From Auanema rhodensis (lineage: Eukaryota > Animalia > Nematoda), in contig OZ059896.1 of assembly GCA_964057225.1 (NCBI GenBank), positions 7,068,001-7,132,000 of the forward strand: 64,000 bases of DNA. Direction: 5' to 3'. Below, in pieces: positions 1-50,802 of the stretch. The number at the start of each line of letters is the position of its first letter. Position 1 is the first letter of the stretch. The notes below the pieces were generated by a model, which had not been told where the DNA came from, did no database searches, and saw nothing but the letters and a program-made list of their open reading frames with translations. Both the position numbers and the translations under genes were made by a program.

Positions 1-1342
1 TGCTCGGACAAGGATTAGTAATTTATAAAAAAAAAGAAGACAGATCCTATTCCTCGGCTCTCGCTTTTTCTCTCTCTCTCTCTCTCTCTCCCTATGTTTC
101 TTTCTTCCTCTCTCTTTTTACCTCTTCTCCCACTCTTCTCTTCCTACAATTCGTCTACCCTCCCACAATCCAGCATCATCTTTCGATTCCATCACCACAG
201 ATCTGAAAATCGTCGTCGTCCATTGAATGTCATAAAAGTTTCTATAGAGTTTTTAATATGTCCTTCTGTTGTAGTTGCCAAGCAAGCTTATAGCTTAGCA
301 TTAAAGAAATGTTCTTGTATAAGAAATATGAAAATAGTTAAATAGACGATTTTACAATATACTATATAATACAGATAGATATACATACATACATATAATT
401 TATTTCTTTTCCCTTTTTTTTTCTTAAATTATGAATATTACAATGATGATACATGAATATTATTATAATATATATAAAACATTTATATAATCATGATGAT
501 AATCTTTTTTTATTTATAAATACAAATATATATTGTAATACAAACATTGATACATGTTTCATCATCATGATTGATCATTTATTAACTTCGACAATATCCA
601 ATTTATTTTTCTTTTATCTAAATAATAAAACAAAAAGATTACAGAATTAATTTGTCTTCTTGAAAATATATATTTTTATTTTTATAAAATAAAATTATAT
701 GAAGTTTTATGTTGCATTCATCAAGTTCATACTTCATACAACTTTTGCAAAAGTTTTAAAGTTGAAACTAATACAGTAATAAAATTAATTTTATACAATT
801 TATGAAATTCCCTTATTTTTTATTAAGAAAATTTTAGAAAAAAGTTGCATATTTGAAATATGAATGGGTTTTCTCCAGAATCTAAAAATGAATCATAGTA
901 ATTGTGTAATATCGTCATGTTCATAAATCTGAAACGCATGTGTCATAAATGGAGGTATGTGTAGCAAAAGCTTATCATGTTTGAATATGCTTTGATGATT
1001 TCAAAACTTAAAGCTATTAAACTTTTGAAAGAATTTTCTTGACGACAGTTTGGAAATATCCATATAATAGAATATGAGAGATGGAATGCTGAAGAAAGTC
1101 ATATAGTTGCGAATAGAAGACGCAAAATGAGAGATTCTGGCAAACGAAGCAAAGGTGACAGAATGAAACTAAAGAACATGGTAGATGACGAATCAAATAA
1201 TAAAATAGCTAAGTGTTATATAAACTTATCAAATGGCTCTTGATGCTATAGGATAGTTTAGTTCAATTCAATTTTTACGTTAAAGAAACATTCTGTGCTT
1301 TCTCCTTTTCTTTTCTAAATTATTTTGCTTTTTAAGGTAAAG

Positions 1343-2307: not shown

Positions 2308-5300
2308 AATTATATTTTTATTATAAATAATGATTTTAGGATCAATTGCACTTTGGGCTCGTCAAAAGTATCCTGAACTTATATTTGGAGCTGTTGCTAG
2401 TTCAGCACCGTTGCAAGCAAAAATTGACTTTTATGGTTAATTCAATTATAAAATAAATAAATTAAAAACAATAAATTAAATAATTTAGAATATGGAATGA
2501 GTATTGAATCATTATTCTCATCTGATTCCGAATGCTATGAGAAAGTTGCAAAAACATTTAGTCAATTTATTGACCAATTCAAGAACGATCGAGCAAATCT
2601 TGCTAAAGAATTAAAGTTTGTTTATTTATTAAAAATAATTTAAAAATAAAAAATATTAAGTATAAAATATGATGCAAATCAAGATAATGTTGATTATACA
2701 TCAGATCAATTTTTATTTTGGACATTACAACAACCATTTCAAATTATAACTCAATATTATAATGTTGGAACAGTAAGTTTTGAACTTTGATATAGTTAAA
2801 TTTTTATTTTTTCTTCTAATATTCTAGAGATTTCAAGATTTTGGTCTAAAAGATATTTGCGATATATTCAAAAATGCAGATGATAAAACTCCTCTTTTCA
2901 CAGCAATTAAAACAGCTTACGGTATAGTAGAATTGAAGAATTTTTATTTTTATTTTTAAAATTTTAGAAAAATATTATAAACAACCAATTACTGAACTTA
3001 ACACTAACTATGCTAGTGCTGTTGCAACTTTAAAATCTGAAGATATGACAACAGTATCATATGATTGTAAGCAAATTATTTTTTAATTATTATTAATATT
3101 ATTTCCTACTTTTTTATTTATTTTTCAATATTTCAATATTATTTAAACTTAAAAAAAATGTCAAACTTTCTATTTTCATAGACGAAAATCGTTTATGGCT
3201 TTGGCAATTGTGTACGCAATTAGGATATTCTATAACAACTGATAATGGGTTAGATACAACGCTGTTTGGTTCCACAGTATCAACTAGGTATTGAGATTAC
3301 GGTAGATTAAAAAATATTAAAAATATAATGTTTGAAGTTTGTTTGCTGAACTATGTAAAGATGTATTTGGTTTGAGTATTAACGATGTCATTGCTGGCAT
3401 TGAAGCGACAAATTCAAAGTTTGGAGGAATAGCTGGGTATACGGTATATGAACTTCGATAAAACAGTGTTTTTGAACAAAAATTATTATTATTTAGGGTA
3501 CAAATGTAATATTTATTACTGGAACATATGATCCATTTCAATATTTAACTAAACAAAATGGAACGAATAAAAGTATTCGATCATTATATACTAAAGGTTA
3601 TATTATCTAAATAGTTTTGTTTAAAAATTAATTTAATTAATTCAGGAGGTAGTCATACTTCAGATATGTATCCATCTGATGATCAAAACATTAAGAACAC
3701 TCAAAATGCTATTAAAACGTACATTAGAGATTGGTTCAAAAATAAGGATACACCATTACATGGTGATATATTCTTGCTTCAAACTCATTATTTCTCTTTA
3801 TTTTAAGCTTCAACTGTAGCACCATGGGATGTCGAATTTAGAGTTAAAAAGACATTCAATAGCAATGCAACAGTTTTACAGAGTCATGTCACTCATGAAG
3901 TATGTGTTTTTATATTTTTTTTTGTAATTTTATATGTAATTTCAGCATATACCTATAGCAGCTTTTGATGTCAAGCCTGATATTAAATTAAAACTTTCTC
4001 AAGTTTTCTTTGGTCGTCCACCATATGGCTTCACACCATCACCTAAATGGGTTAATGATAACGAAAATTCTGGAATCAGAGGCCAAATTACACAAAGGTT
4101 GAACCATGAAGATGAGAATAGTCCACGTTTTCAACAGGTTTATATCTAAACATACTTATTTTTGTTAATTTTAATATAATGATCTTTCAAGTTTTATTGC
4201 CAATACGGAGAATATGAAAAACCAGATGGTCCAGTGTATTTGGTAATAGGTGGAGAATCAGGCATAGATTGTAATTGGATTATTGATAATTCATCAACAT
4301 ACGTCCAAATGGCAAAAGAAGCTCATGCTACCTTGTATTTCTTGGAACATCGATTCTATGGAAATAGTAGAGTTCAAGGGTATAAGTTGTAATATAAGTT
4401 GTATTTCTATATATTTCTATTTAGATATAATAATTTGAAATATTTAACTATGTCTCAAGCAATTGAAGATATTGGAAGTTTCATTGAATTCAAGAAATCA
4501 AAACATTTAAAAAAGCAATGGATCTTGTTTGGATCATCATATGCTGGTATATCTTATACTATATTATTATTATTATTATTTACTAAAATAATATATTTGT
4601 TCAGCAACCTTAGCAGCAATAGCTCGAATAAGATTCCCTGATATAATTGCCGGTGCTGTAGGTGGTTCAGCATTTTTAAATCCACAGTTTACATATTTGA
4701 GTATAGTCACTGTATAAATTATAAAATAATTTATTTATTATATAGGAAATACTATGCAAATGGAATTAATTATACGTAATCTTAAAGATTCTTGTGCAAA
4801 TGGTATACAAAAAGCATTTACTGAATTAAGAAATGCTGTAATGACAGCAGATGTTGCAGCAAAGTTTGGTACTAATTTCAAGTAAGTTATAATATTTATA
4901 TGTATAATTAAATATTTAAATTAATAATAATATTACAGTATGTTTGAAGATCGAAAGTTAGAAACTATAGATGATCGTCAATATTTCTTTTATATATTAT
5001 ATAGTGCTATACAAGGATCATTATTTTTTAATGAACAAAAACTTGTAATAATTCAAGTTTTTCAACAAATTTATTTTATTTTTCTTAAATTAAGGATGAT
5101 GCACCAGCTTTTCTAACAATGTGTGAATCATTAGAAAAAGGAAGTATAGAAGGTTTATCGAGTTATATGGATTATTCAAATGCTATATATGAGGTAAAAT
5201 AATAGTATTTCTTATAATATTTTCTTATTTTATGTATTATAGGCTGACACAATACTTTCAAGAACAAGTGTTATTAATGTTTTAAAAGATATTTATGATT

Positions 5301-6150
5301 CTCATGAAAAATATGATAATAGTTAGTTATAACATTAATTATAATTTTTTTTAAATAAAATAAATTTATAGAAGATATTGCTACTGCTAATTGGATTTGG
5401 CAATCATGCTCTGAATTGGTCAGTTTTCCAAGTGCAGATTCAGGTGCAAGCATATTTGGAACTCCTACATATGTTGAGTATGTTATATAAATTATAATTT
5501 TTTTATAGTTAAAATAATAATTATTTCAGTTTCTTTGTTAGATTTTGCAAAGATGTTTTTCATTCAAATTTATCAAATACTTCATCAATAGATTTTGATA
5601 ATACAGCTCGAATTACATCTTATTTAATTGATAATTACATATTTAACGTAAGAATTATTATTTAAAATATGTTTTTTTATTTTATTTTATTTTTAGAGTG
5701 ATGATATGATATTTGTTAATGGAGGTTCTGATCCAAGACTTTACTTAAATATTCCAAAAGATTGTTCAAAAGAAATTGATATGACCGTAATTAACAGTAA
5801 TAATTTATTGAAATTTATAAAAATTAAATATTTATTTTTAGAAACATCTCATTCAGCTTTATTTTATCCAGCAAGTGATAATGATCCTGTTGAATTAATT
5901 CAAATTAGAAAAGCTATAGTTTCAAAAAGTAAAACATGGACAGCCCATTTGATTACAACAACAGAATCACCTGATATTTCGACAACTAGTGGTAATGGTG
6001 ATGATTCTACAACAAGTCAAATTGCAACAACAACAACAACAGGTAAGCTTCATTATACATTATTAAATTATTTAATAATTTCTTTTAGACTCTGTATCGA
6101 AATTGACCATTTCATTAAGTATATATCTTATTTCTTTGTTTTTAATTTAG
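1343..6150 (+). CDS. Multi-exon S28 family serine carboxypeptidase (prolylcarboxypeptidase-like) with two tandem S28 domains, Thr-rich stalk and hydrophobic C-terminus (probable GPI signal)
   Basis: Spliced translation, domain 1: FKQKIDHF, GLEHRYYG, LKYLTIEQTVEDIAYF, WIIFGGSHAG, GAVASSAP, WLWQLCTQLG, TGTYDP, GGSHTSD. Domain 2: FLGRPPYG, YLVIGGE, LEHRFYG, LKYLTMSQAIED, ILFGSSYA, WIWQSCSE, NGGSDP, TSHSAL. Ends TTTT..LSIYLISLFLI*. Confidence 0.9.
2272..2302. repeat. (TA)n microsatellite in an S28 gene intron
   Basis: About 15 TA units. Confidence 0.9.
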
Positions 6151-8955
6151 TTTTAATAATTCTTGATTTAAATAATAAAATTTTCATTTATTTATTTATT
6201 TATAAATAATTATATTATTAATTATACTAATTATAAAACTTATTTTATTACTTCTTTACTCATAAGCTAAAACTGCAAATATATTTTTTTTGTCTCTTCT
6301 TCAATGAATGAACAAGACACAACAACACACATGATAGTTAAATGTACGACGTTAAGTCAGTTGTTCATTCTCCTTTCTCAGACTCACCTTCTCTTTCTAT
6401 CTCTTTCTATCTCTCTCTCTCTCTATATCTCTCTCTATCTATCTATCTCTATCAATCTATTTCCCTCTGAATTTTCTATTACTATCTTAAGTTTTCATTA
6501 TCACTTTCTATTGATGTCTGCACAATAGATCAGTAATTTAACTGAGCGGGGGAGTGTAGCTTTGTGAAGAACATATTTTTAACTGTGAAGAAGCTAAGTT
6601 AAAACAAAATGAAAAATAGAAAAAAAAAACAAATTCATTCAAACACAGGAAATTCTTTTAAAATTTGGAAATTGTTGATGAGAATCTTCAATTAAATAAA
6701 CGTTTAATAAATATTTTCTATATTTAAAATAATTTTAAATTAAAATTATAATAATCAATTAAAATATTTTAATTAATTATATTTTACTTTAACTAACATT
6801 TTTAAAAAAATTTATTTCATTTCTCTATAAAACTCAAAACATGTGCCTTAGTTAAAATCTAAAAAGCTTGTCGGGAAGCAACACCATATGGCAAAAGCTA
6901 AAGCTAAGAATTGTGCTGTAACATTCAGTGAATTCGTCTTTGTTTTCATCTTCTCCTTCGTCTTCATCGTCTTCATCATTTCCATCTTCTTACTATGTAT
7001 TTTCTACTTTTTAATCTTATTTTCTAAACTTTTCCAGAACATTCTGGATAATTATTAAAAAAATGTTTTATTACAATAAAGATTTTTCATTTATTTTAGT
7101 AATTTTTATATTAATTACAAGCAAATATTTCTTATTTTCTTTTTTAAATTATAATTAACAAAGTTTTTATTATTTTTTTCAAATTTATCAATCTTTCTAC
7201 TACTGTACTGTAATCTATACATTGAAAATGTAATGAAGATAACATTCAACTCTTTCGATTATTCCAAGAAGCTATCTAAGAAAAAAAAAGAAAAAGATAA
7301 ACCGAGCTAAACCATCTCCTCCTACTCGTTCCACTTCTGCTCTTCCTTCCAATTTTCTTCAACCTTTTTTTCAAATTTTCTCTATATATATCATTGATCT
7401 CTCAATCATATTGTGTCTAACATTATCTCTTGATCAATGCTCTGACTATGGCAACTAGAATCAGCTACTAAGGTCTTCATCATTCATAGATCTGAGAGAC
7501 GAAATAAAGAAAATACATATATTAACACAAACTTTATATATATAAATATATATATACAAGAGGTTCAGACAGTTAGAGATAATGAAAAGAAGTCTGTCGC
7601 TGATGCGGGGGCTGAGAAAGGAGGAGCTGGCACAGCCAACGGCATTACAGCGGGACCTATGGTTCCTATCTCACCCCCCTCATTTTCTCTAAAACTCTCT
7701 TTATTTTTCTCTTTTGCTCTCTTATTTCTTTTAACTATCTGCCTTTCTCTCTTCAATTTCTATACTACTTACTCCGTTTTTTCATCGTCGATTTCTGTTG
7801 CTTATCATCTGTTTCGTTCACTTTCTGCTATCTAGCCCAGCTTCTTCTTTCAGCCTCTCTCCCCCCCCCCCTCAACCAGCTACCCAGAAACTCCCAGCCT
7901 TCCCGGCTAATGTGCCTCAGTAGTTCTATACAGTGGAAAAGTCTTCACAAGAATATGATTTTCTTTCTTCCTTCATTTTCATTTTCTGTAATTTTAATTT
8001 TCAAATTTAGAATTTTCATTTCTACCCATGTCCTTACGTGTTGTTTCTCAAAGCTTTTTCATAAAATAATTTGTGTAGAAATCTTATATTTTAAATTTTA
8101 AAATTAATTTACAACAAAAATTATTTTATTTTAATAAATTGAAACTATTTTTTCAAAAAATGTAAATGGCTTTCTTTCGTACAAAGATCTATTATTACAA
8201 CATGGCTTAATGCTTTAACGCCCACCATATTATCCAATTTTTTGAATTTAAACCGTAGTGCAAGAGGAATATTACTGTTTGATATGTAAGCCTCAGGCAC
8301 ATTTTCCAAAAAATTATATATTTTTGAAAGTTGGCGTTACTCTGATTTTCTTTTTTGTCTTTTTCCGAAGTTTGTATAATTTGCTGTCACTTGTAGTATT
8401 CACCTATTTCTCTAACACCTTCTATAAATTTTCTTTATATCTTTCTATCTACTGTCCCTTTGCATCTGTTCCCTCTTCTCTCTTCAATATCTCTCATCCG
8501 TTGTGGTGGGTTGTAGGAAGGTGATGAGGTTGTGAGGAAGGATCTCCTCTTCTCCTCCTCCGCTATCATCTCTCTTGTCTTCTTGCCTACGGCCACATGT
8601 CAAGCGAGGGCAGGAAATGCCTGTCTCTTCTGTTTTTCAGATTCTTATTTCTCTTTTTCTTTTTTTCTCTTATCTTCTATCACTCTTTCAATAGTTTATC
8701 AAATCCCTTTATTCTTCATACAAGCTATTCACATCAGCCAGTCTCTGTCCATCTTTATTGGTGATCATTCCAACATGTATTCCAGCATTATCTCTTCTGT
8801 CGTTTACCATGTAAAGATTTGAAACTTGAAACTTAATAATGTTTCTAAATATTATTTTATATGTTGTAGTAAATATTTCGTTTCAATTTATAAATAGAAT
8901 TAATTACAACTCTTCTTATTATTATATATCATATTTTAGCGAATTTTGAACCAGA

Positions 8956-10779
8956 ATGTCTGACTTTGACGAGGGTCTTCGTTACGGTGGTCAACAAGCC
9001 GATGAGGGCGATGTGAGTAAAGTCATTCAAATTTTCCTTAAGTTCTAGAAAATTCTCAATTATTGATATTTATGATGTTTGTTCCGAATCAAGTTACATC
9101 AGTTGATTTCAGGATGCTGCCCGCAAGGCTCAGGAACGTGAGGCCAAGAAGGCTGAGGTTCGTAAGCGCTTGGAGGAAGCCGGAAACAAGAAGAAGTCTA
9201 AGAAAGGTTTCTTGACTCCTGAAAGAAAGAAGAAGCTCAGAGTATGTTCAGACATTTTTCATTCAAGATAGTATTACCAATGACCATATTTGCAGAAGCT
9301 TCTTATGATCAAGGCCGCTGAAGACCTCAAGAGACAACAGTTACTTAAGGAACAAGAACGACAAAAGATTCTTGCTCAAAGAACTATTCCCCTTCCTGAT
9401 GTTGATTCCATCGATGACAAGGGTAGGTTAATGCCTTTCGAAAAGAAAAAGCTAAGAAACTCTTTCTGATATTTCTCCATCATGTTATTCAATATTATTT
9501 GAATATGATACCTACCTTTTTATCTTTTATTTTATCATGTAAAATCTATATAAACTGACTATTTATAGTTATATTACAAGAGTTAACTCAGTTTTTTTTT
9601 AAATGGAATGCCTCGTTTACCATTGATTCTATAAGCGTTCCAATACATCTCGTTTAAAGCTTACACTTTGGTGATCGATCCTCATTCTTTCTCTCTCTCT
9701 CTCATTCATACATCCTCATTCCCTCTCTCTCATTCTCACCTTTTCTTTCTTACAACTTTTTTGTTCTCTCTATCTCTCTAAAGTTTTCATTTTATTTCTC
9801 TTCTTCTTTCATTCTCTTTGCTTTTTCACTTGTGCTCATTCAATGAATGATGTGTAATAGAAAAGAAAAGCAAAACTCAATACAAAATATTTCTTCACTG
9901 AATCTTAAAACTTTATCTTCCAATTCAATAATTTTAAATTCTAATATAAAAAATATTTTCTTTTTATCAATCTATCTTATATGTTATAATTTAGGCAAAC
10001 TTGAGCAAATCTACAATGACATGTTCGAGCGTGTCTGCAAGCTTGAAGAGGAGAAGTACGACATCAACCGCATTGTCACCCAGGCTGAGGTTTGTTTTAT
10101 ATAAATTTGTAACATCTTTGTATTATTTAGATGAAACATTATCATTTATTATTTCAATTAAAATATATTTTTAGTCTGAAATTAACGAGCTTACCATCGC
10201 CGTCAACGATCTCCGAGGAAAATTGTAAGCTTGTTATGAATTTTTCAAAAATGCTTCATCTCAATATTTTAGCGTTAAGCCAACCTTGAAGAAGGTTTCC
10301 AAGTATGAGAACAAGTTCAAGACCACCAAGATCAACACCGTAAGTTCTTTGTTTTCATTATTTTCTTGTTGTTATTGGGTTTTGACCCTTTTCATAAATA
10401 TAAGCAATTCGATTATGAATTGAAATTTCTTTCAGCAAACCGAAAAGCAAGATTTCCGTGCCAACCTCAAGGTTGTCAAGAAGGAGAATGCTATTGAGAA
10501 CATCATGAGCAAGACCAAGAAGAACACTGAGAAGCCAGACTGGTCCAAGAAGCCAGCTACAGATGAGCCAAAGGACGACAAGAAGGAAGAGGTATGTGCT
10601 TACTTTCACTTCTCAAGCACTGACAAGTTGCATTTATAGGCCAAGGAAGAAGCCCCAGCTGAGCCAGAACCAGCCGCTGAGGAAGGTAAGTAGCTTTTTC
10701 AAAATTCAATGAATGTCCATTTACTCAACTTGTTTCAGTTGAAGAAGAGGAGGAGGAAGAGGAGGAGGAGGAGGAATAA
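8956..10779 (+). CDS. tni-1: Troponin I (body-wall muscle type; tni-1/unc-27-like) with poly-Glu tail
   Basis: [103 protein letters not shown]. The paralogue assignment is tentative. Confidence 0.93.
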
Positions 10780-11728: not shown

Positions 11729-13617
11729 CTACTTGCGTCCAAAACGAATCAAAGGAGATGAAGCAGCTGGAGAACGTCCAAATCTCACAATTGGGGCTCC
11801 CATACTACGTCCAAATCTGAAATTTGTTAAATGATTTCTGATTATATGTTTATAGTTTGATTTGATAAATCACAAAAATATATTAGTTGTTTTAAAATAT
11901 TATTGAGAGAGAAACTACAGTACCTGATGAGAGGTGCTCCTGCACTTCTCTTTCCAAAACGGATGAGAGGTGAAGCTTCTGGTGCACGCCCAAATCTGAA
12001 AATGGATTGAAAGATTAAATTATTTTCAAAAACGAAATGAATTGCTTAGCAAAAAAATATCTAACTACCTGATTATAGGGGCGGATGCCTCTTCCATACT
12101 TCTTTTACCAAAACGAATTAATGGTGATGCCTCAGGAGCACGTCCAAATCTGAAAAAACGAAATATCGAAAAGTAAATATTGAACATTGCAAGCATATTT
12201 TTTTTATAAAATGATTAAAAAGAATTGATGATTTGATATGAATATCAGTTAGTTTTTTGCAAAAACCATTTGTATTATATTCAATATTTGCAATCTAATC
12301 TAATAATATTTATATGATCTTGTATCATCTTATATTTATGTTTATCATAAAGTTTAATTGGACTATCTTTTCAATCAAAGTTCTATATAAAGCTGGACAA
12401 GATGTTGAAACTTCACTCATTCGCCACATCTCGTCTTCAAACCAACATGCATCTCCAACTTATCTTTATCAGCTCTTTGGCTGTTATCATGCTAACTTCG
12501 GCTTGTGCTCCCCCAGCAAACCCTGCAGAACCAGAAAATGGTGGAGGAGAACGTAAACGTCGCTCTGTTGCTACTGTGGACGATTCAGCTTTCCTTTCTA
12601 TTACAATTGTCACTAATCAAGCTTTTAATGCCGAAACTAACACGGCTAACATGAACCGAGTACGTGATCTGATTGAAGCTTTTGAAGTTCATCATAACAT
12701 CACTTATGATGTTGATCGTCTCCAACATGAAGCTCGCTCAATTGGAGGAAAATTGGCTGTTCATTATCAGATGAATGAATCATGCCAGAAGGTAACCAAC
12801 TTTGTCAGCCAAATTCGTCAAGTTTACACAGAGATGATCGCCTACGGATTAATTCATTGCCCCGGACACGCATTAACTGTTGTTTAATTGCAATCAATAA
12901 ATTCATTTTTTATGTTAACTTTTCCTTTATTATATAATTTTAATTTTGTATATTATTCACCTAATTAGAGGAGCTGAAGCTTCTTGAGAACCAGATCGTT
13001 TGCCGAATCTAATCAATGGGGATGCCAACTCCTAAAAAGCAAAATTTTGCAAAAAAAAAAATAAAAAGCATCGCAAAGAGCAACTATATGTTATAACATT
13101 ACAAGATCTAATTGTAAAAATAAAATAAAAACATGTTTCTTTGTTCCATAATCCAAGAGTCAATCAGATATTCATAAGCTTTCATAAAAGTTTTACTATT
13201 TTGAAAAAAAAACGTAGGTTTACTTTTTTTTTCAAATGTTAACTAGTATATTGACAAATACTATTATTTTTTTTTATAGTATTGAATGTTATAAAGTTTA
13301 TTATCACCTCATATGATCTTCCAAAGCGGTAAATATCTTCACTTCTCTTTGATGTGGGATCTAAAACTAAAATGTTTACTATTATATATATATTTGTAGA
13401 ATTATGAAAAAAAAAACATATTTAATTGAATAATATTAAAAGATCAAAAGATAAAAGATCTCTTTACTCTGTAACTTTTAACTCAAATTGACTTACATTC
13501 GCCTTCAAGCATTCGGATCTCGCTGGAATCAAAAGCTTGTCCAACAGAAAGAACCGCAAGGAAAAGGCAGAAGCAAAAAGCTGTAGAAGAAGATGAATAG
13601 TATCTCGTAGACATCAT
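11729..13617 (-). CDS. flp-13: FMRFamide-like neuropeptide precursor FLP-13 (6 coding exons)
   Basis: Signal peptide followed by AFDSSEIRML, then repeated (S/A)PLIRFG-R/KR units including APEASPLIRFG twice; ends FGRK*. Confidence 0.93.
12384..12391 (+). promoter_or_regulatory. TATA box of the nested secreted gene
   Basis: TATATAAA about 25-30 nt upstream of an initiator-like TTCACTC and about 55 nt upstream of ATG 12447. Confidence 0.6.
12447..12887 (+). CDS. Intronless secreted protein (signal peptide, CAP N-terminus, RKRR proprotein-convertase site, ~110 aa mature domain with 2 Cys), nested antisense in flp-13 intron 3
   Basis: 146 aa ORF MHLQLIFISSLAVIMLTSACAPP..GGGERKRRSV..; TATATAAA at 12384-12391 and AATAAA at 12896-12901; codon usage (cgt, aac, ttc) resembles troponin I. 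Confidence 0.85.
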   Translation: MHLQLIFISSLAVIMLTSACAPPANPAEPENGGGERKRRSVATVDDSAFLSITIVTNQAFNAETNTANMNRVRDLIEAFEVHHNITYDVDRLQHEARSIGGKLAVHYQMNESCQKVTNFVSQIRQVYTEMIAYGLIHCPGHALTVV

Positions 13618-45666: not shown

Positions 45667-47045
<1,379 letters not shown>

Positions 47046-47181
47046 TTCTAAATCAGAAGTGTTGGATAAGTATTTTTCCGTCAGATAAAATATGTTACTA
47101 ACATGTTGTGCAACAATCACAAATATAAAAGAATGTTTATTAATAGTTCTGTATAATGACAAAAACTTGACTAGTATGTAC

Positions 47182-50100
47182 TCATTCAACCTTTTTTGAT
47201 GACCATAGAGTTTGGGGAATGTTCATATAAGCGATAGTAAGCATAATTACAATGTGAGATACGAATAAAGGTAGAAAACAGGAATAAGTATAAGATGAAA
47301 CCAAATAAGCTAAAGGAGCACCAGCGAAAACTGCACCAACTGAAAAGAATAAATGATGGATAAAAAACTTATATTAAACTTACAGTTAGCAATAAAAGAA
47401 GTGAACGCACTAAATGAACCTGCATTGTTTTTAAGACCAGCTTTGGCTGAAATCATACACCAGACATTTATTGAAGAATTGACAAAAAATCCCAGAATAA
47501 ACCCAAGTGGTATGATAAGGTTCTAAACAGTTGATATAAAGGTTCCATGTGAGTTTGTAAACAACTTACGGAGACGCTTGTGGAAATAGCCACGGTTGAA
47601 ATCATGATAAATTCGAAGATGAACGCTAGGATTCGCCTTGCTTTCAAAGCATCGACATATTTACAAAGTAAATCTAGAATTATTCCCGAAGCAAAAGTTC
47701 CGATTATACTGAAAACAAAATTTGAATAATGATCAGAAAAATTGACAAACCCTCCCATTTCATAGAGGAACATAAATTGAGCACTATCTAGTTTAATATC
47801 ACTGATATACAGTGGAAGCCAACTTTCAGAAACTGTTCTAATCTATAAACAAAAAAAGATACTAATATGTACCTTAGGAAATGTTCACCTCGAGTACAAA
47901 CAAAAATGGAAGAGCAACCCCCCATAAGACAGGTGTTTTCAACAAACTGAAGACTGATGCTTCGTTTTCTTTTTTAGCTATCTTTTGCTCTTCAACAATT
48001 TCACTGCTCTTGATCAGAAAATAACCAACGATGGAAAAGGCGATACAGCCGAAGGCTATAAGTTATTGATTGGGATAAAAATTATATGCATGATAAGGCT
48101 ACCTAAAAACGATGAGAATGTTCTCCAGTAAAACCAGGTAATTGTTGGAAGAAGCAATCCAGCAATATTACTTCCACATCCAAGTAGAGAAAAAAATTTT
48201 CCGAACGAATCATCTTTGAACCACTTAAATAATGCATAAGTTATTACATATGCAAATTTTTCTAATATTGCTCACTTTTCCTACTAATTTCGTAGCAGGA
48301 ACCCATCCAGCTCCTTGTAAAGACCCGATTAATGCAACAGATATCAACACATGACTAAGACATGAAGCATAACCTTAAGAGGTTATTTTATTTTCTATGA
48401 TTTCAAAGTTATCACAAACTCAAAGTGAGAATCGATAAGGCAGTTCCAAAGAGACCAGACATAAGTAAGATATCTGGAGAAATCTTATCAGATGCAACTC
48501 CAAAAATTAGTTTGCTGGCAGTAAAGCATAATGCTTGAGTCGAAACAAGAAAGCCTAAAACACAAAAAATTGTTCGTTTAGTTCGCATGAAACACTAAAC
48601 AACATTTAACATCAATTCATACTTTATTCCACAAAATAAACGTATAAAAAAATTAATTGACATTTAAAGCACAAGCGAGATATGACCTAACTATGAAAGT
48701 GATTAGAAATGCTATCAAAGGTGTGCTTTGCAGAAAACACCTGGTTTCCTTGCCTAAACTACGAATTTCTCGCTCTTAATATATCGCAGAAAACTTCATA
48801 AAAAAGGAAAGCACAACCCGAACTTGCAGCTGCTTTCAGCTGACTAGGCAGTAAACCTTTGAATAACCCATAAATAGATTCATTCCGTAAAATAAACATC
48901 ATGGATCGAATCATTCCGCGGTCATGTACAGATTGTTTTCCAAATCCTGATCGTTTGAAACCATTGACTTGTAGTCGATGTCTAACCATATCCAATGGAT
49001 AAAGAACCTAAAGACAACGCGCAAATTTGAATATTTCACGGTGTCCTTACCGTTTTAGCTACAGTTCCGGAAGCAGCACCTGCGACTAAAGCCCCATAAT
49101 TTTCATGATTTTCAACCAACTTGTTCCAGATTTTGTAAAAAGCATTGTACATAGTGAACTGAAGTCCCGTGAATGGAGCTACTTGTATTAATCCAGGAAC
49201 CCAACCACGGAAGTAACCTTTAAATCCCTCTGTTCGCCAGATATGTGGCAAAGCATCTATTGTTCCTAAAGAGCATGGTGACTCTTCTAACTACATTTCG
49301 GAAACCTTTATAAACAACAGATTCATGACCTTGAGCAACAAGTCGCGTTCGAATAACATCCAAAGGCATTGCAGCAGTCATAGCAAAGCATCCAGCTAAA
49401 CTACCACATGCGAAGTCTATAGGTGAGTGGAATTTGTTCACTATATCTGTGTTAAGATGAATGGCGACCCAAAATAATAAACATTTAAAAAATATGATAT
49501 GCCAAAAAAGGAATACTTGCCGGGTCAGCCATTCAAAAGAGGCAAACTGCACAAGTCCGTATACAGCTGAGAGACCCTGTGCTGGAATATGGCCTTTCCA
49601 GAAAGCTCTGGCACTTTCTTCACGTAAAATAACCCGAACAGATTGCAGTATTCCCTTAAAAAAAGCATAAGACCTGTCGATCACAACCAGATACCTTGTA
49701 TTTTCCAGAATTAGCCCCCCCGATAGGTTCTTCCTGCAATTGAAACCTAATTTTTAAAACATCTAGTGGTTGGATAATCACACGAGTGGCTATACCACTA
49801 ACTAATCCCGCTTCACTAAATCAATCCAAATCAGAACCATGGCAACGGCCGAGAAATACCTGTGCTCGACAGATGACAGCTCTCTACCATTAATAGGTTC
49901 TGACTCATACCCTACCATTACATACAAATACTAAATGATCTGTAATACCAAAGATCATTTTCAAAAAAAAAATATAAATAACTCAAATAAAAGAGCTTAA
50001 TAATCATAAAAAAACAGAAATCAATCACAATATTTGGATTCAGACAATTAGACCAGAGATGAACATGAACCAATACATTTATAAAGGTATTAGAACCTAC

Positions 50101-50224
50101 CGATGTTATCCTTTGTTAATAAAATTTCATCTCTGATCTGACTGAGAGACATGATAGGAAGTCTTCGGCAGTAGACATACAGAATGTAAGTAGTCAGAAC
50201 CACTATGAATTTTAAGAGAGCCAT
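47182..50224 (-). CDS. SLC37A4/G6PT-like MFS sugar-phosphate antiporter; exon 1 at 50101-50224, exon 2 starts at 48554
   Basis: YILYVYCRR..DEILLTKDNIG|FLVSTQALCFTASKLIFGVASDKISP..LQGAGWVPATKLVGKWF..FGKFF..SNIAG; later FLYEMGGIIG and GAVFAGAP. This parallels SLC37A4 (EEIPLDKDDLGFITSSQ..AQGLGWPPCGKVLRKWF). Confidence 0.85.
48759..49918 (-). CDS. SLC25A19: Mitochondrial thiamine pyrophosphate carrier (SLC25A19-like), nested same-strand in intron 1 of the SLC37A4-like gene
   Basis: AGLVSGIATRVIIQPLDVLKIRFQLQEEP, AFWKGHIPAQGLSAVYGLVQF, PLDVIRTRLVAQG, YPLDMVRHRLQ, GLFKGLLPSQLKAA; three PxD/ExxK/R carrier repeats. Confidence 0.93.
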
Positions 50225-50802
50225 ACTGCAACTTAATATTAGGAGACAATAATACCACTCACAATTTTCCAAGCAAAATGATTAAAAATTGTTATATATA
50301 GAGATAATTGAATGATAAAAACATTAATACATCTAATTTTAGAAAAATGATGAAATCATGAAGTCTTAAAACTTTTCGAAAAAATGATGTCATCATTACG
50401 GCACACAATATCATATATTAACCACAATCAACGTGAGAAAAATCTAATTTATTGTTTTAAAGACAAACTTCAAGGTCAACGCACAAGCAGTATAAAGTAA
50501 AATTATTTCTAATAAAATTATCTATGAAAAAAACGGAAATTAAGATTATGCCCTTCAAGATCATGAACAAGTTAGAAATTAAATCCTACGAGAAATGCAA
50601 TGTTTACTTTCGTAAAAACAGTGCATTTGTATGTAAGAAGTATCCCTCACAAGAAGCTACAGTTTTTCTCTATTTAATGGGTTTATGTATGCCATTTTGT
50701 GTTGATTTTCATAAGATTTGTATATATATAAATATACATTCACTGTTAAATATCGTTTCCAGTCATTAATATCCCAAGTTATATTAAGGGTTTGTTTTTG
50801 TA

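Follow-up and report, generated by a model that had tools for sequence, protein, structure and literature searches.

How are two unrelated transporter genes expressed when one lies wholly within the first intron of the other, on the same strand? The nematode Auanema rhodensis raises this question in a 64,000-nt stretch of DNA (the window, meaning the whole stretch analysed), where the gene of a predicted mitochondrial thiamine pyrophosphate (TPP) carrier sits in intron 1 of the gene of a predicted SLC37-like MFS transporter, both on the minus strand. The answer that we consider probable is that the two genes make up one transcription unit of this clade V nematode, with a common first exon that is joined to either gene through alternative 3′ splice sites.

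Structure of the locus

The shared exon 1 (50101..50263, minus strand), defined by RNA contigs, carries the host ATG at 50224 and ends at the donor G|GTAGGT; its coding part of 41 codons and 1 nt, ending in phase 1 at 50101, contributes TM1 of the MFS protein. Host exons 2-9 (47182..48554), placed by joints in RNA contigs and by the ORF, extend over 48554-48420, 48373-48276, 48223-48103, 48055-47889, 47842-47751, 47708-47570, 47522-47384, and 47339-47182 with the stop codon, and together with exon 1 they encode a protein of 390 aa. Exon 2 is preceded by the acceptor TTTTAG and by the distal host intron 1 of 1546 nt (48555..50100, GT..AG; joint 48553|50100, cut +1, in runs X1-X4), which contains the entire carrier gene, the carrier spanning 49939-48604 and the intron 50100-48555. 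The carrier gene (48604..49939), delineated by RNA contigs, its ORF and Mito_carr matches, has six exons (49939-49860, 49815-49695, 49654-49517, 49468-49306, 49265-49051, and 49007 to about 48604), with the acceptor AG at 49941-49940, the ATG at 49918, the stop codon at 48761-48759, and an AATAAA poly(A) signal in the sequence at 48623..48628. Between exon 1 and the carrier acceptor lies the proximal intron 1a of 161 nt (49940..50100, GT..AG; joint 49939|50101 in X1-X4). Introns other than these two measure 40-52 nt. All coordinates given in the first-pass annotation of this DNA, including ATG 50224, donor 50101, acceptor 48554, and AATAAA 48628-48623, hold upon re-checking of the sequence, and the same-strand nesting that it described is borne out by RNA contigs at all exon boundaries.

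The carrier ORF is intact over 314 aa given a 48-nt intron 3 (49469..49516), which has non-canonical ends in the RNA contigs (GT..GG in the best register; joint 49466|49515, AC..AT on the plus strand with 2 nt of slack, in four of four runs). A canonical 70-nt GT-AG intron at this position, which would cause a frameshift, was discarded in favor of the 48-nt intron seen in RNA, and the idea of a carrier pseudogene was dropped since that intron preserves the frame. Similarity searches used single exons or relatives' proteins as queries. Mito_carr (PF00153) matches fall on five carrier exons (2-6) and span three repeats, and the carrier shares 65-69% identity over its full length with nematode proteins that bear the name mitochondrial thiamine pyrophosphate carrier, C. 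elegans P0192 among them; in the same search, vertebrate TPCs were 41-45% identical to the Pristionchus query. The only other genomic copy of the carrier is 32% identical. We predict the carrier to be the TPC/SLC25A19/HPO-12 ortholog, a ThDP transporter.

The MFS_1 match on host exon 2 covers profile positions 37-78, and the exon begins at SLC37A4 residue 53; an upstream exon encoding TM1 is therefore required. The exon-1 peptide is conserved in C. elegans, C. brenneri, Ostertagia, and Pristionchus, and neither this peptide alone nor a five-species exon-1 profile compared with solved structures yielded an MFS match, the piece being too short in both cases. Orthologs P0171 and P0178 have TIGR00881 as their best NCBIfam match (1.8e-56 and 1.7e-103, respectively, both below the curated cut-off). 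The host protein of the window is 46% identical to P0171, whose best solved relative, at distant similarity, is human SLC37A4 (5e-21; GlpT, 1e-11). Judged by sequence, the host is a predicted SLC37-like member of the organophosphate:phosphate antiporter family of the MFS (TC 2.A.1.4), and it may be an ER-located SLC37A4 (G6PT) ortholog.

Downstream, the host gene has an AATAAA in its sequence (47136..47141, minus strand), about 90 nt ahead of the ATG of the next gene, and host RNA contigs terminate at 47135-47158. This next gene is erlin-like, with its first exon at 46941..47047 on the minus strand (ATG 47045; acceptor TTTAG, 47052-47048) and a Band_7 match on its second exon, and it is probably an operon-style downstream gene. 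The upstream neighbor is a divergent Methyltransf_16 gene on the plus strand, starting from 51011.

Alternative use of the exon-1 donor

The RNA evidence consists of Logan contigs from four runs (X1-X4), all of one study. Such contigs lose rare variants and short dead-end tips (22-nt tips are clipped), by which an SL1-joined carrier form could be hidden, and they carry no 5′ ends, tails, or strand information. Within this material, all 14 of the 14 exon junctions of both genes are present in spliced contigs that are identical to the window sequence, with zero differences. The dinucleotides at the joints read CT..AC on the plus strand, matching minus-strand genes, with carrier intron 3 as the one that differs.

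The donor at 50101 is joined to both 49939 and 48554 in each of the four runs. The 50101→48554 junction, which the first-pass annotation had proposed, skips 1546 nt with GT..AG ends and bypasses the entire carrier gene. The 50101→49939 junction (GT..AG, 161 nt skipped) cis-splices host exon 1 to the carrier acceptor, a splice that had earlier been ruled out as out of frame. Each junction is covered by 28-31 nt on the exon-1 side, where the assembly graph branches, and the full-length mRNA lies in no single contig. Because the exon-1 donor can be used only once, the two mRNAs are mutually alternative for each primary transcript, in agreement with the earlier view of the two products as alternatives for a single donor. 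An alternative transporter first exon between 48555 and 48759, raised earlier as a scenario that would do away with the exon 1-exon 2 splice, was not seen, as no joint falls there and the 50101-48554 junction is present; the sole in-frame ATG upstream of host exon 2 (48588) is intronic, and its product would lack TM1.

An artefact, be it a misassembled carrier, a carrier pseudogene, or a false host exon 1, counts as refuted and is highly improbable. Such doubts could draw on the apparent frameshift of the carrier at intron 3 under the GT-AG assumption and on the exon-1 profile, which alone matches no solved MFS. They are met by the zero-difference RNA contigs, the frame kept by the 48-nt intron, the observed exon 1-exon 2 junction, and the single copy of each gene in the 181-Mb genome, and also by the same order of exon 1, carrier, and exon 2 in Ostertagia, Pristionchus, C. 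brenneri, and C. elegans. The exact contigs, single copies, and identical order in relatives likewise refute the misplacement of the carrier by an assembly error, which the first-pass annotation had named as a possible flaw.

As a plausible mechanism under the shared-exon reading, transcription would begin near 50265, below a TATA-like element, and would proceed through exon 1 up to 50101. Splicing to the proximal acceptor at 49939 would then add the six carrier exons and lead to an end near 48604 at an AATAAA-directed site, producing the TPP carrier mRNA, in which exon 1 would be a leader only. Splicing to the distal acceptor at 48554 would remove the carrier gene as an intron and produce the mRNA of the SLC37-like transporter, which would take its start codon and first transmembrane helix from exon 1. 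We infer a single promoter and competition between the two acceptors. A candidate TATA box for this transcription unit, TATATATAA (50292..50300, minus strand), found in the sequence, may have a promoter role; the X4 exon-1 contig has its 5′ end (50263) 29-37 nt downstream of it. In X4 that contig spans 50101-50263, and in X1 it extends from 50101 to beyond 50500, so that the contigs do not pin down a start site. A candidate internal poly(A) site for the carrier, as proposed in the first-pass annotation, lies about 50 nt ahead of host exon 2; this is consistent with the AATAAA and with the end of the X1 carrier contig at 48604, 19 nt downstream of that signal (48628-48623), and the X2-X4 carrier contigs read through to 48526, within host exon 2. 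Exon-1 depth comes close to what the host-junction and carrier contigs give when added together (about 92 vs. 96 in X2 and about 113 vs. 104 in X3), an agreement that is suggestive only.

The same contigs bear on whether the carrier is instead an independent nested gene with its own promoter in host intron 1, the exon 1-49939 junction being splicing noise, which we regard as very unlikely. Positions 49940-50100 have zero contig coverage in all four runs, in X1-X4 the carrier contig continues on its 5′ side into exon 1 and nothing else, and the contig with the 50101→49939 junction is at least as deep as the host mRNA contig. The exon 1-carrier junction furthermore recurs in a strongylid relative. 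What speaks for a separate promoter comes from C. elegans, where hpo-12 contigs begin inside the intron (5857 and 5880 of L009) and carry neither exon 1 nor SL1.

The 5′ leader of the carrier mRNA

Whether a nematode acceptor is cis- or trans-spliced depends on a donor ahead of it in its own transcript: cis-splicing takes place where there is one, and trans-splicing where there is none. The first-pass annotation had assigned SL trans-splicing to the carrier acceptor; the contigs of the four runs, which can hide such ends, contain no spliced leader or loose end at 49939, nor loose ends at 48554 and 47047.

When exon 1 leads the carrier mRNA, the host ATG opens an out-of-frame uORF of 52 codons that overlaps the carrier AUG and ends in GTA TGA, 14 nt beyond it; the stop predicted earlier for this joint is thereby borne out in the sequence. 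With five upstream AUGs, the exon 1-carrier leader is a poor template for the carrier. Since the uORF overlaps the carrier AUG, translation of the carrier would need reinitiation, leaky scanning, or a minor SL1 trans-spliced form. The distance from the uORF stop to the carrier AUG was considered as a conserved feature and rejected as such: in A. rhodensis the stop ends 14 nt downstream of the AUG, in the strongylid it precedes the AUG by 39 nt (observed), and in Pristionchus it would do so by 3 nt (predicted).

In a different balance, SL trans-splicing at 49939 (or 49931), with internal polyadenylation, would be the main source of the carrier mRNA, exon 1 would serve the transporter only, and the exon 1-carrier RNA would be a minor by-product. 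An SL1-led carrier mRNA would be free of upstream AUGs, the A. rhodensis genome holds at least 1258 exact SL1+GT copies, and the clipping of 22-nt tips during contig assembly can make SL1 forms vanish. In the strongylid relative, the homologous acceptor is found with SL1 in one contig (L016), with four more that have an SL1-like GAG tail, against a single contig with exon 1 (L012). We nevertheless judge this balance unlikely, as the carrier contig runs unbroken through the acceptor into exon 1 in four of four runs, an SL1 branch of similar abundance would be expected to interrupt it at 49939, and an exon-1 depth of about 2-2.7 times that of the host-junction contig, albeit a weak measure, fits most carrier mRNAs having exon 1. 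Under the shared-exon reading, SL1 trans-splicing at the carrier acceptor is plausible as a minor route because the homologous strongylid acceptor takes either exon 1 or SL1.

A further-reaching, and rather doubtful, extension would give exon 1 a dual use, as start codon and signal-anchor helix for the distal gene and as a regulatory uORF for the proximal one. Translation of the uORF and the choice between cis-splicing and SL1 would then set the amount of carrier, and one promoter would serve two metabolite transporters at a ratio fixed by RNA processing, conserved across clade V.

Conservation of the locus

The ortholog comparison suggested in the first-pass annotation reveals the order exon 1, carrier, exon 2 also in Ostertagia, Pristionchus entomophagus, C. 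brenneri, and C. elegans. As annotated in C. elegans, hpo-12 (6001-7700) falls within the MFS coding range (5670-10554 of L009). Look-ups of contigs for the C. briggsae MFS proteins gave none. The nested layout is absent beside the carrier in Brugia and Bursaphelenchus. The downstream Band_7 neighbor is shared with C. elegans, C. brenneri, and Pristionchus.

Both ways of reaching the carrier acceptor are seen in the strongylid relative. There, contig L012, from an independent study, has 30 nt of the orthologous exon 1 spliced onto the 5′UTR exon of the carrier, and contig L016 has the homologous acceptor joined to SL1; four further contigs begin with the SL1-like GAG tail, and only L012 shows exon 1. 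In C. elegans, RNA contigs L010 and L011 have an hpo-12 5′UTR that follows the genomic sequence without a break, beginning 47-70 nt below the donor of exon 1. Given these contigs without exon 1, the shared-exon route is not universal.

Discussion

Loci of this kind are already known in C. elegans from unc-17/cha-1 and unc-60, as is the nested annotation of hpo-12 in that species. In unc-17 (VAChT)/cha-1 (ChAT), alternative splicing connects a common 5′ exon to one gene or the other, the proximal gene possesses a separate 3′ end, and the products are unrelated proteins (PMC3875643). The A. rhodensis locus is alike in that the proximal gene lies inside the distal intron 1 and one 5′ exon is joined to either gene. 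However, the shared exon of unc-17/cha-1 is untranslated and the products act in one pathway, whereas in A. rhodensis the shared exon encodes the distal start and first transmembrane helix and forms an out-of-frame uORF in the proximal mRNA, and nothing evident connects the TPP carrier with the SLC37-like transporter in function. In unc-60 (UNC-60A/UNC-60B), two sets of exons, each closed by a separate poly(A) site, follow a common first exon, and the choice lies in whether the proximal acceptor is used or spared (PMC3875643). The two unc-60 products are paralogous cofilins that both start at the shared ATG; here, the shared ATG serves only the distal product, and the proteins are unrelated.

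The closest counterpart by position is C. elegans hpo-12 (C42C1.10) within its MFS gene, with the same gene order and strand as in A. rhodensis, erl-1 (C42C1.15)/Band_7 downstream, Methyltransf_16 nearby, and the carrier 3′ end about 65 nt ahead of MFS exon 2. It differs in that the hpo-12 contigs seen have a colinear intronic 5′UTR in place of exon 1. The nesting that the first-pass annotation described stands, but the rarity that it ascribed to same-strand nesting is weakened by its conservation across clade V, its presence in the C. elegans annotation, and the precedents of unc-17/cha-1 and unc-60. Our literature search returned no paper on the hpo-12-inside-MFS arrangement, and a search on C. 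elegans alternative operons returned nothing; Morton and Blumenthal reportedly described unusual operon arrangements in 2011.

The locus also resembles SL2-type operons in its same-strand genes and in the distances of about 50-100 nt from a poly(A) signal to the next acceptor, both between the carrier and host exon 2 and between the host and the erlin-like gene. Unlike in such operons, host exon 2 is an internal coding exon dependent on exon 1, and SL1 or SL2 junctions are seen nowhere in the A. rhodensis contigs, which can hide them. C. elegans erl-1 has been reported in an operon (PMC3292932).

The A. rhodensis locus adds a second, non-neuronal case to a very short list of nematode first exons common to two unrelated genes, and this shared-exon locus is conserved from Caenorhabditis to strongylid parasites. 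At a single 3′ splice site, it brings together cis-splicing to an exon further upstream and, as seen in a relative, SL1 trans-splicing, and it thus lends itself to work on how nematodes decide between the two reactions. Automatic annotations are wrong at this locus in several parasitic and free-living nematodes, where the carrier is fused to the MFS protein or the first MFS exon, with transmembrane helix 1, is omitted.

A carrier gene nested on the same strand within an SLC37-like transporter gene

The minus strand of the window holds two genes between 47182 and 50263. The host ATG is at 50224; exon 1, with 41 codons plus 1 nt, ends at 50101 at the donor G|GTAGGT. Eight further exons (exons 2–9, minus strand) lie between 48554 and the stop at 47182, and the full MFS-type protein has 390 amino acids. 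Between host exons 1 and 2, also on the minus strand, lie the six exons of the carrier gene (ATG at 49918, stop at 48761–48759, 314 amino acids; AATAAA at 48628–48623, minus strand). A Methyltransf_16 gene lies upstream in the opposite orientation (from 51011, plus strand), and an erlin-like Band_7 gene follows downstream (start at 47045, minus strand). Host and carrier are each single copy in the 181-Mb genome.

Pfam Mito_carr is matched on five carrier exons, and across its whole length the carrier shares 65–69% identity with nematode proteins bearing the name mitochondrial thiamine pyrophosphate carrier; in the same search, vertebrate TPCs are 41–45% identical to the Pristionchus query. MFS_1 is matched on host exon 2 from profile position 37, leaving room for one helix upstream of that exon. 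For orthologs of the host protein, the top match among solved structures is human SLC37A4 (5e-21), ahead of GlpT, in an alignment that places query residue 3 at SLC37A4 residue 53, and the best NCBIfam model is TIGR00881 (organophosphate:Pi antiporter family), with a score below its cut-off. Judged by these similarities, the host protein can safely be termed SLC37-like, short of an SLC37A4 ortholog in the ER.

Exon 1 is shared by host and carrier transcripts

We compared the locus with RNA contigs from four public runs of one study (X1–X4), in which 60–64% of sampled words of 46900–50500 are present. All introns are missing from the contigs, with CT..AC at the edges of each gap (GT..AG on the minus strand), and the remaining letters agree with the window without exception; the contigs are therefore cDNA of this organism. 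Each exon boundary of both gene models is reproduced by them, bearing out the nested same-strand layout. The host junction proposed in the first-pass annotation, 50101 to 48554, is present in all four runs, skipping 1546 nt that include the entire carrier gene. A second joint, 50101 to 49939, likewise occurs in four of four runs, skips 161 nt and places host exon 1 onto the carrier 5′UTR exon; it contradicts the earlier view that cis-splicing of exon 1 to a carrier acceptor was unusable given the ensuing stop. The observation thus stands, and the mechanism attached to it is partly corrected. On the exon 1 side each key joint spans only 28–31 nt, since a k=31 graph branches where one exon has two continuations.

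Across the four runs, 49940–50100 has zero contig coverage, and none of the contigs is reported with an unmatched leader at 49939. In X2 and X3, exon 1 depth approximates the summed depths of host-junction and carrier contigs; in X4 it reaches 0.7 of the sum. Contig depth, a weak measure by the tool's own warning and used here as a hint only, suggests that exon 1 is present on most carrier RNAs. In this species, the cis route to carrier mRNA is the one seen; an SL1 route is plausible and, if minor, would be hidden from contigs. In X1, the exon 1 contig extends upstream past 50500 at depth 24 (50264 to beyond 50500, minus strand), a region with weak coverage in X2 and X3 and none in X4; this may stem from starts farther upstream, or from carry-over of unspliced or genomic material in a single sample.

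Leader, 3′ end and intron 3 of the carrier mRNA

When exon 1 serves as leader, five AUGs precede the carrier AUG. The host AUG, with A at −3 and G at +4, opens a uORF of 52 codons whose TGA ends 14 nt past the carrier AUG. Translation of the carrier from this form could proceed by reinitiation or leaky scanning, or depend instead on a minor SL1-capped form.

In X1 the carrier contig stops at 48604, 19 nt beyond the AATAAA. Those of X2–X4 continue into host exon 2 as far as 48526, which shows that some RNA extends beyond the putative carrier poly(A) site.

Carrier intron 3 (49469–49516, minus strand) is removed as 48 nt, and none of its registers (GT..GG, TA..GG or AT..GT) has GT–AG ends. From the same donor, a 70-nt GT..AG version that looks canonical is unused and would break the frame. 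The 48-nt form may reflect a genuine but unusual 3′ splice site or a wrong base in the assembly.

The layout recurs in other clade V nematodes

Searching with the last carrier exon gave predicted carrier–MFS fusion proteins from Pristionchus entomophagus and Ostertagia ostertagi, and in both loci an orthologous exon 1 precedes the carrier and exon 2 follows it: in Ostertagia exon 1 at L005:5–100, carrier at 4758–9390 and exon 2 at 10003; in Pristionchus exon 1 at L006:7754–7880, carrier ATG at 8001 and exon 2 at 12752, then Band_7. In C. brenneri (L007), exon 1 ends at 6166, the carrier spans 6363–7438 and exon 2 begins at 7782. On C. elegans chromosome IV, the annotated MFS coding range (L009:5670–10554, 403 amino acids) surrounds the carrier (6001–7700, 313 amino acids), and a Band_7 (erl-1-like) gene comes next after the MFS gene; the nested layout itself is thus already known from C. 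elegans annotation. We equate this carrier (P0192) with C42C1.10, which is hpo-12 (PMC3048360), through its cosmid neighbourhood with erl-1 (C42C1.15), a reported operon member (PMC3292932). No MFS exons lie within 8–10 kb of the carrier in Brugia or Bursaphelenchus, so on this small sample nesting is a clade V feature. The clade IV model P0003 (Rhabditophanes sp. KR3021) fuses the carrier to an upstream t-SNARE protein, a different upstream neighbour.

Many automatic models are wrong at this locus. Carrier–MFS fusions are found in Pristionchus entomophagus, Ostertagia, C. angaria, Cylicocyclus and one further representative (fusions P0001, P0002, P0196, P0198 and P0015), and MFS models of H. 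contortus and C. briggsae omit exon 1, starting at or after exon 2 (other faulty models P0171, P0178 and P0181); all of these lack the TM1 exon.

The architecture matches that of unc-17/cha-1, with a shared 5′ exon and the proximal gene inside the first intron, and unc-60, with a shared first exon, two exon series and a poly(A) site for each (PMC3875643). Unlike in those systems, the shared exon here codes for the distal gene only and is a uORF-bearing leader for the proximal gene. No paper on this locus was found in the literature searched.

The route to carrier mRNA varies among species

RNA contigs L012–L019, from a strongylid relative, come from two or more studies. At the homologous carrier acceptor, L012 carries 30 nt of exon 1 and L016 carries SL1; four further contigs start with GAG, the SL1 tail, unlike the exon 1 tail. 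Two C. elegans hpo-12 contigs carry neither exon 1 nor SL1, and their 5′UTR is colinear with the genome from 47–70 nt below the exon 1 donor, which is suggestive of a separate start within the intron (L009:5857–6000). The carrier mRNA is thus reached by different routes in different species.

In two of the strongylid contigs, L013 and L015, a TTAG|GTTAGT donor in the carrier 3′UTR is joined to the MFS exon 2 acceptor with the AATAAA removed, yielding a bicistronic carrier plus MFS RNA; two others, L012 and L014, are unspliced read-through.

The nematode SL1 leader followed by a GT donor has at least 1258 exact copies in the genome, most in a tandem array of 252-bp period (G000:C3:6741531–6770267 and beyond; array stretches L022 and L023); the SL1 gene array is very large. 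Taken with the homologs found, these copies identify the genome as that of a nematode near clade V species. At the erlin-like gene, no leader letters are reported at the contig 5′ end in the four runs, and depth arithmetic puts that end at 47049 in all four (47021–47049, minus strand), 2 nt inside a TTTAG acceptor, which fits an SL ending in AG joined at 47047.
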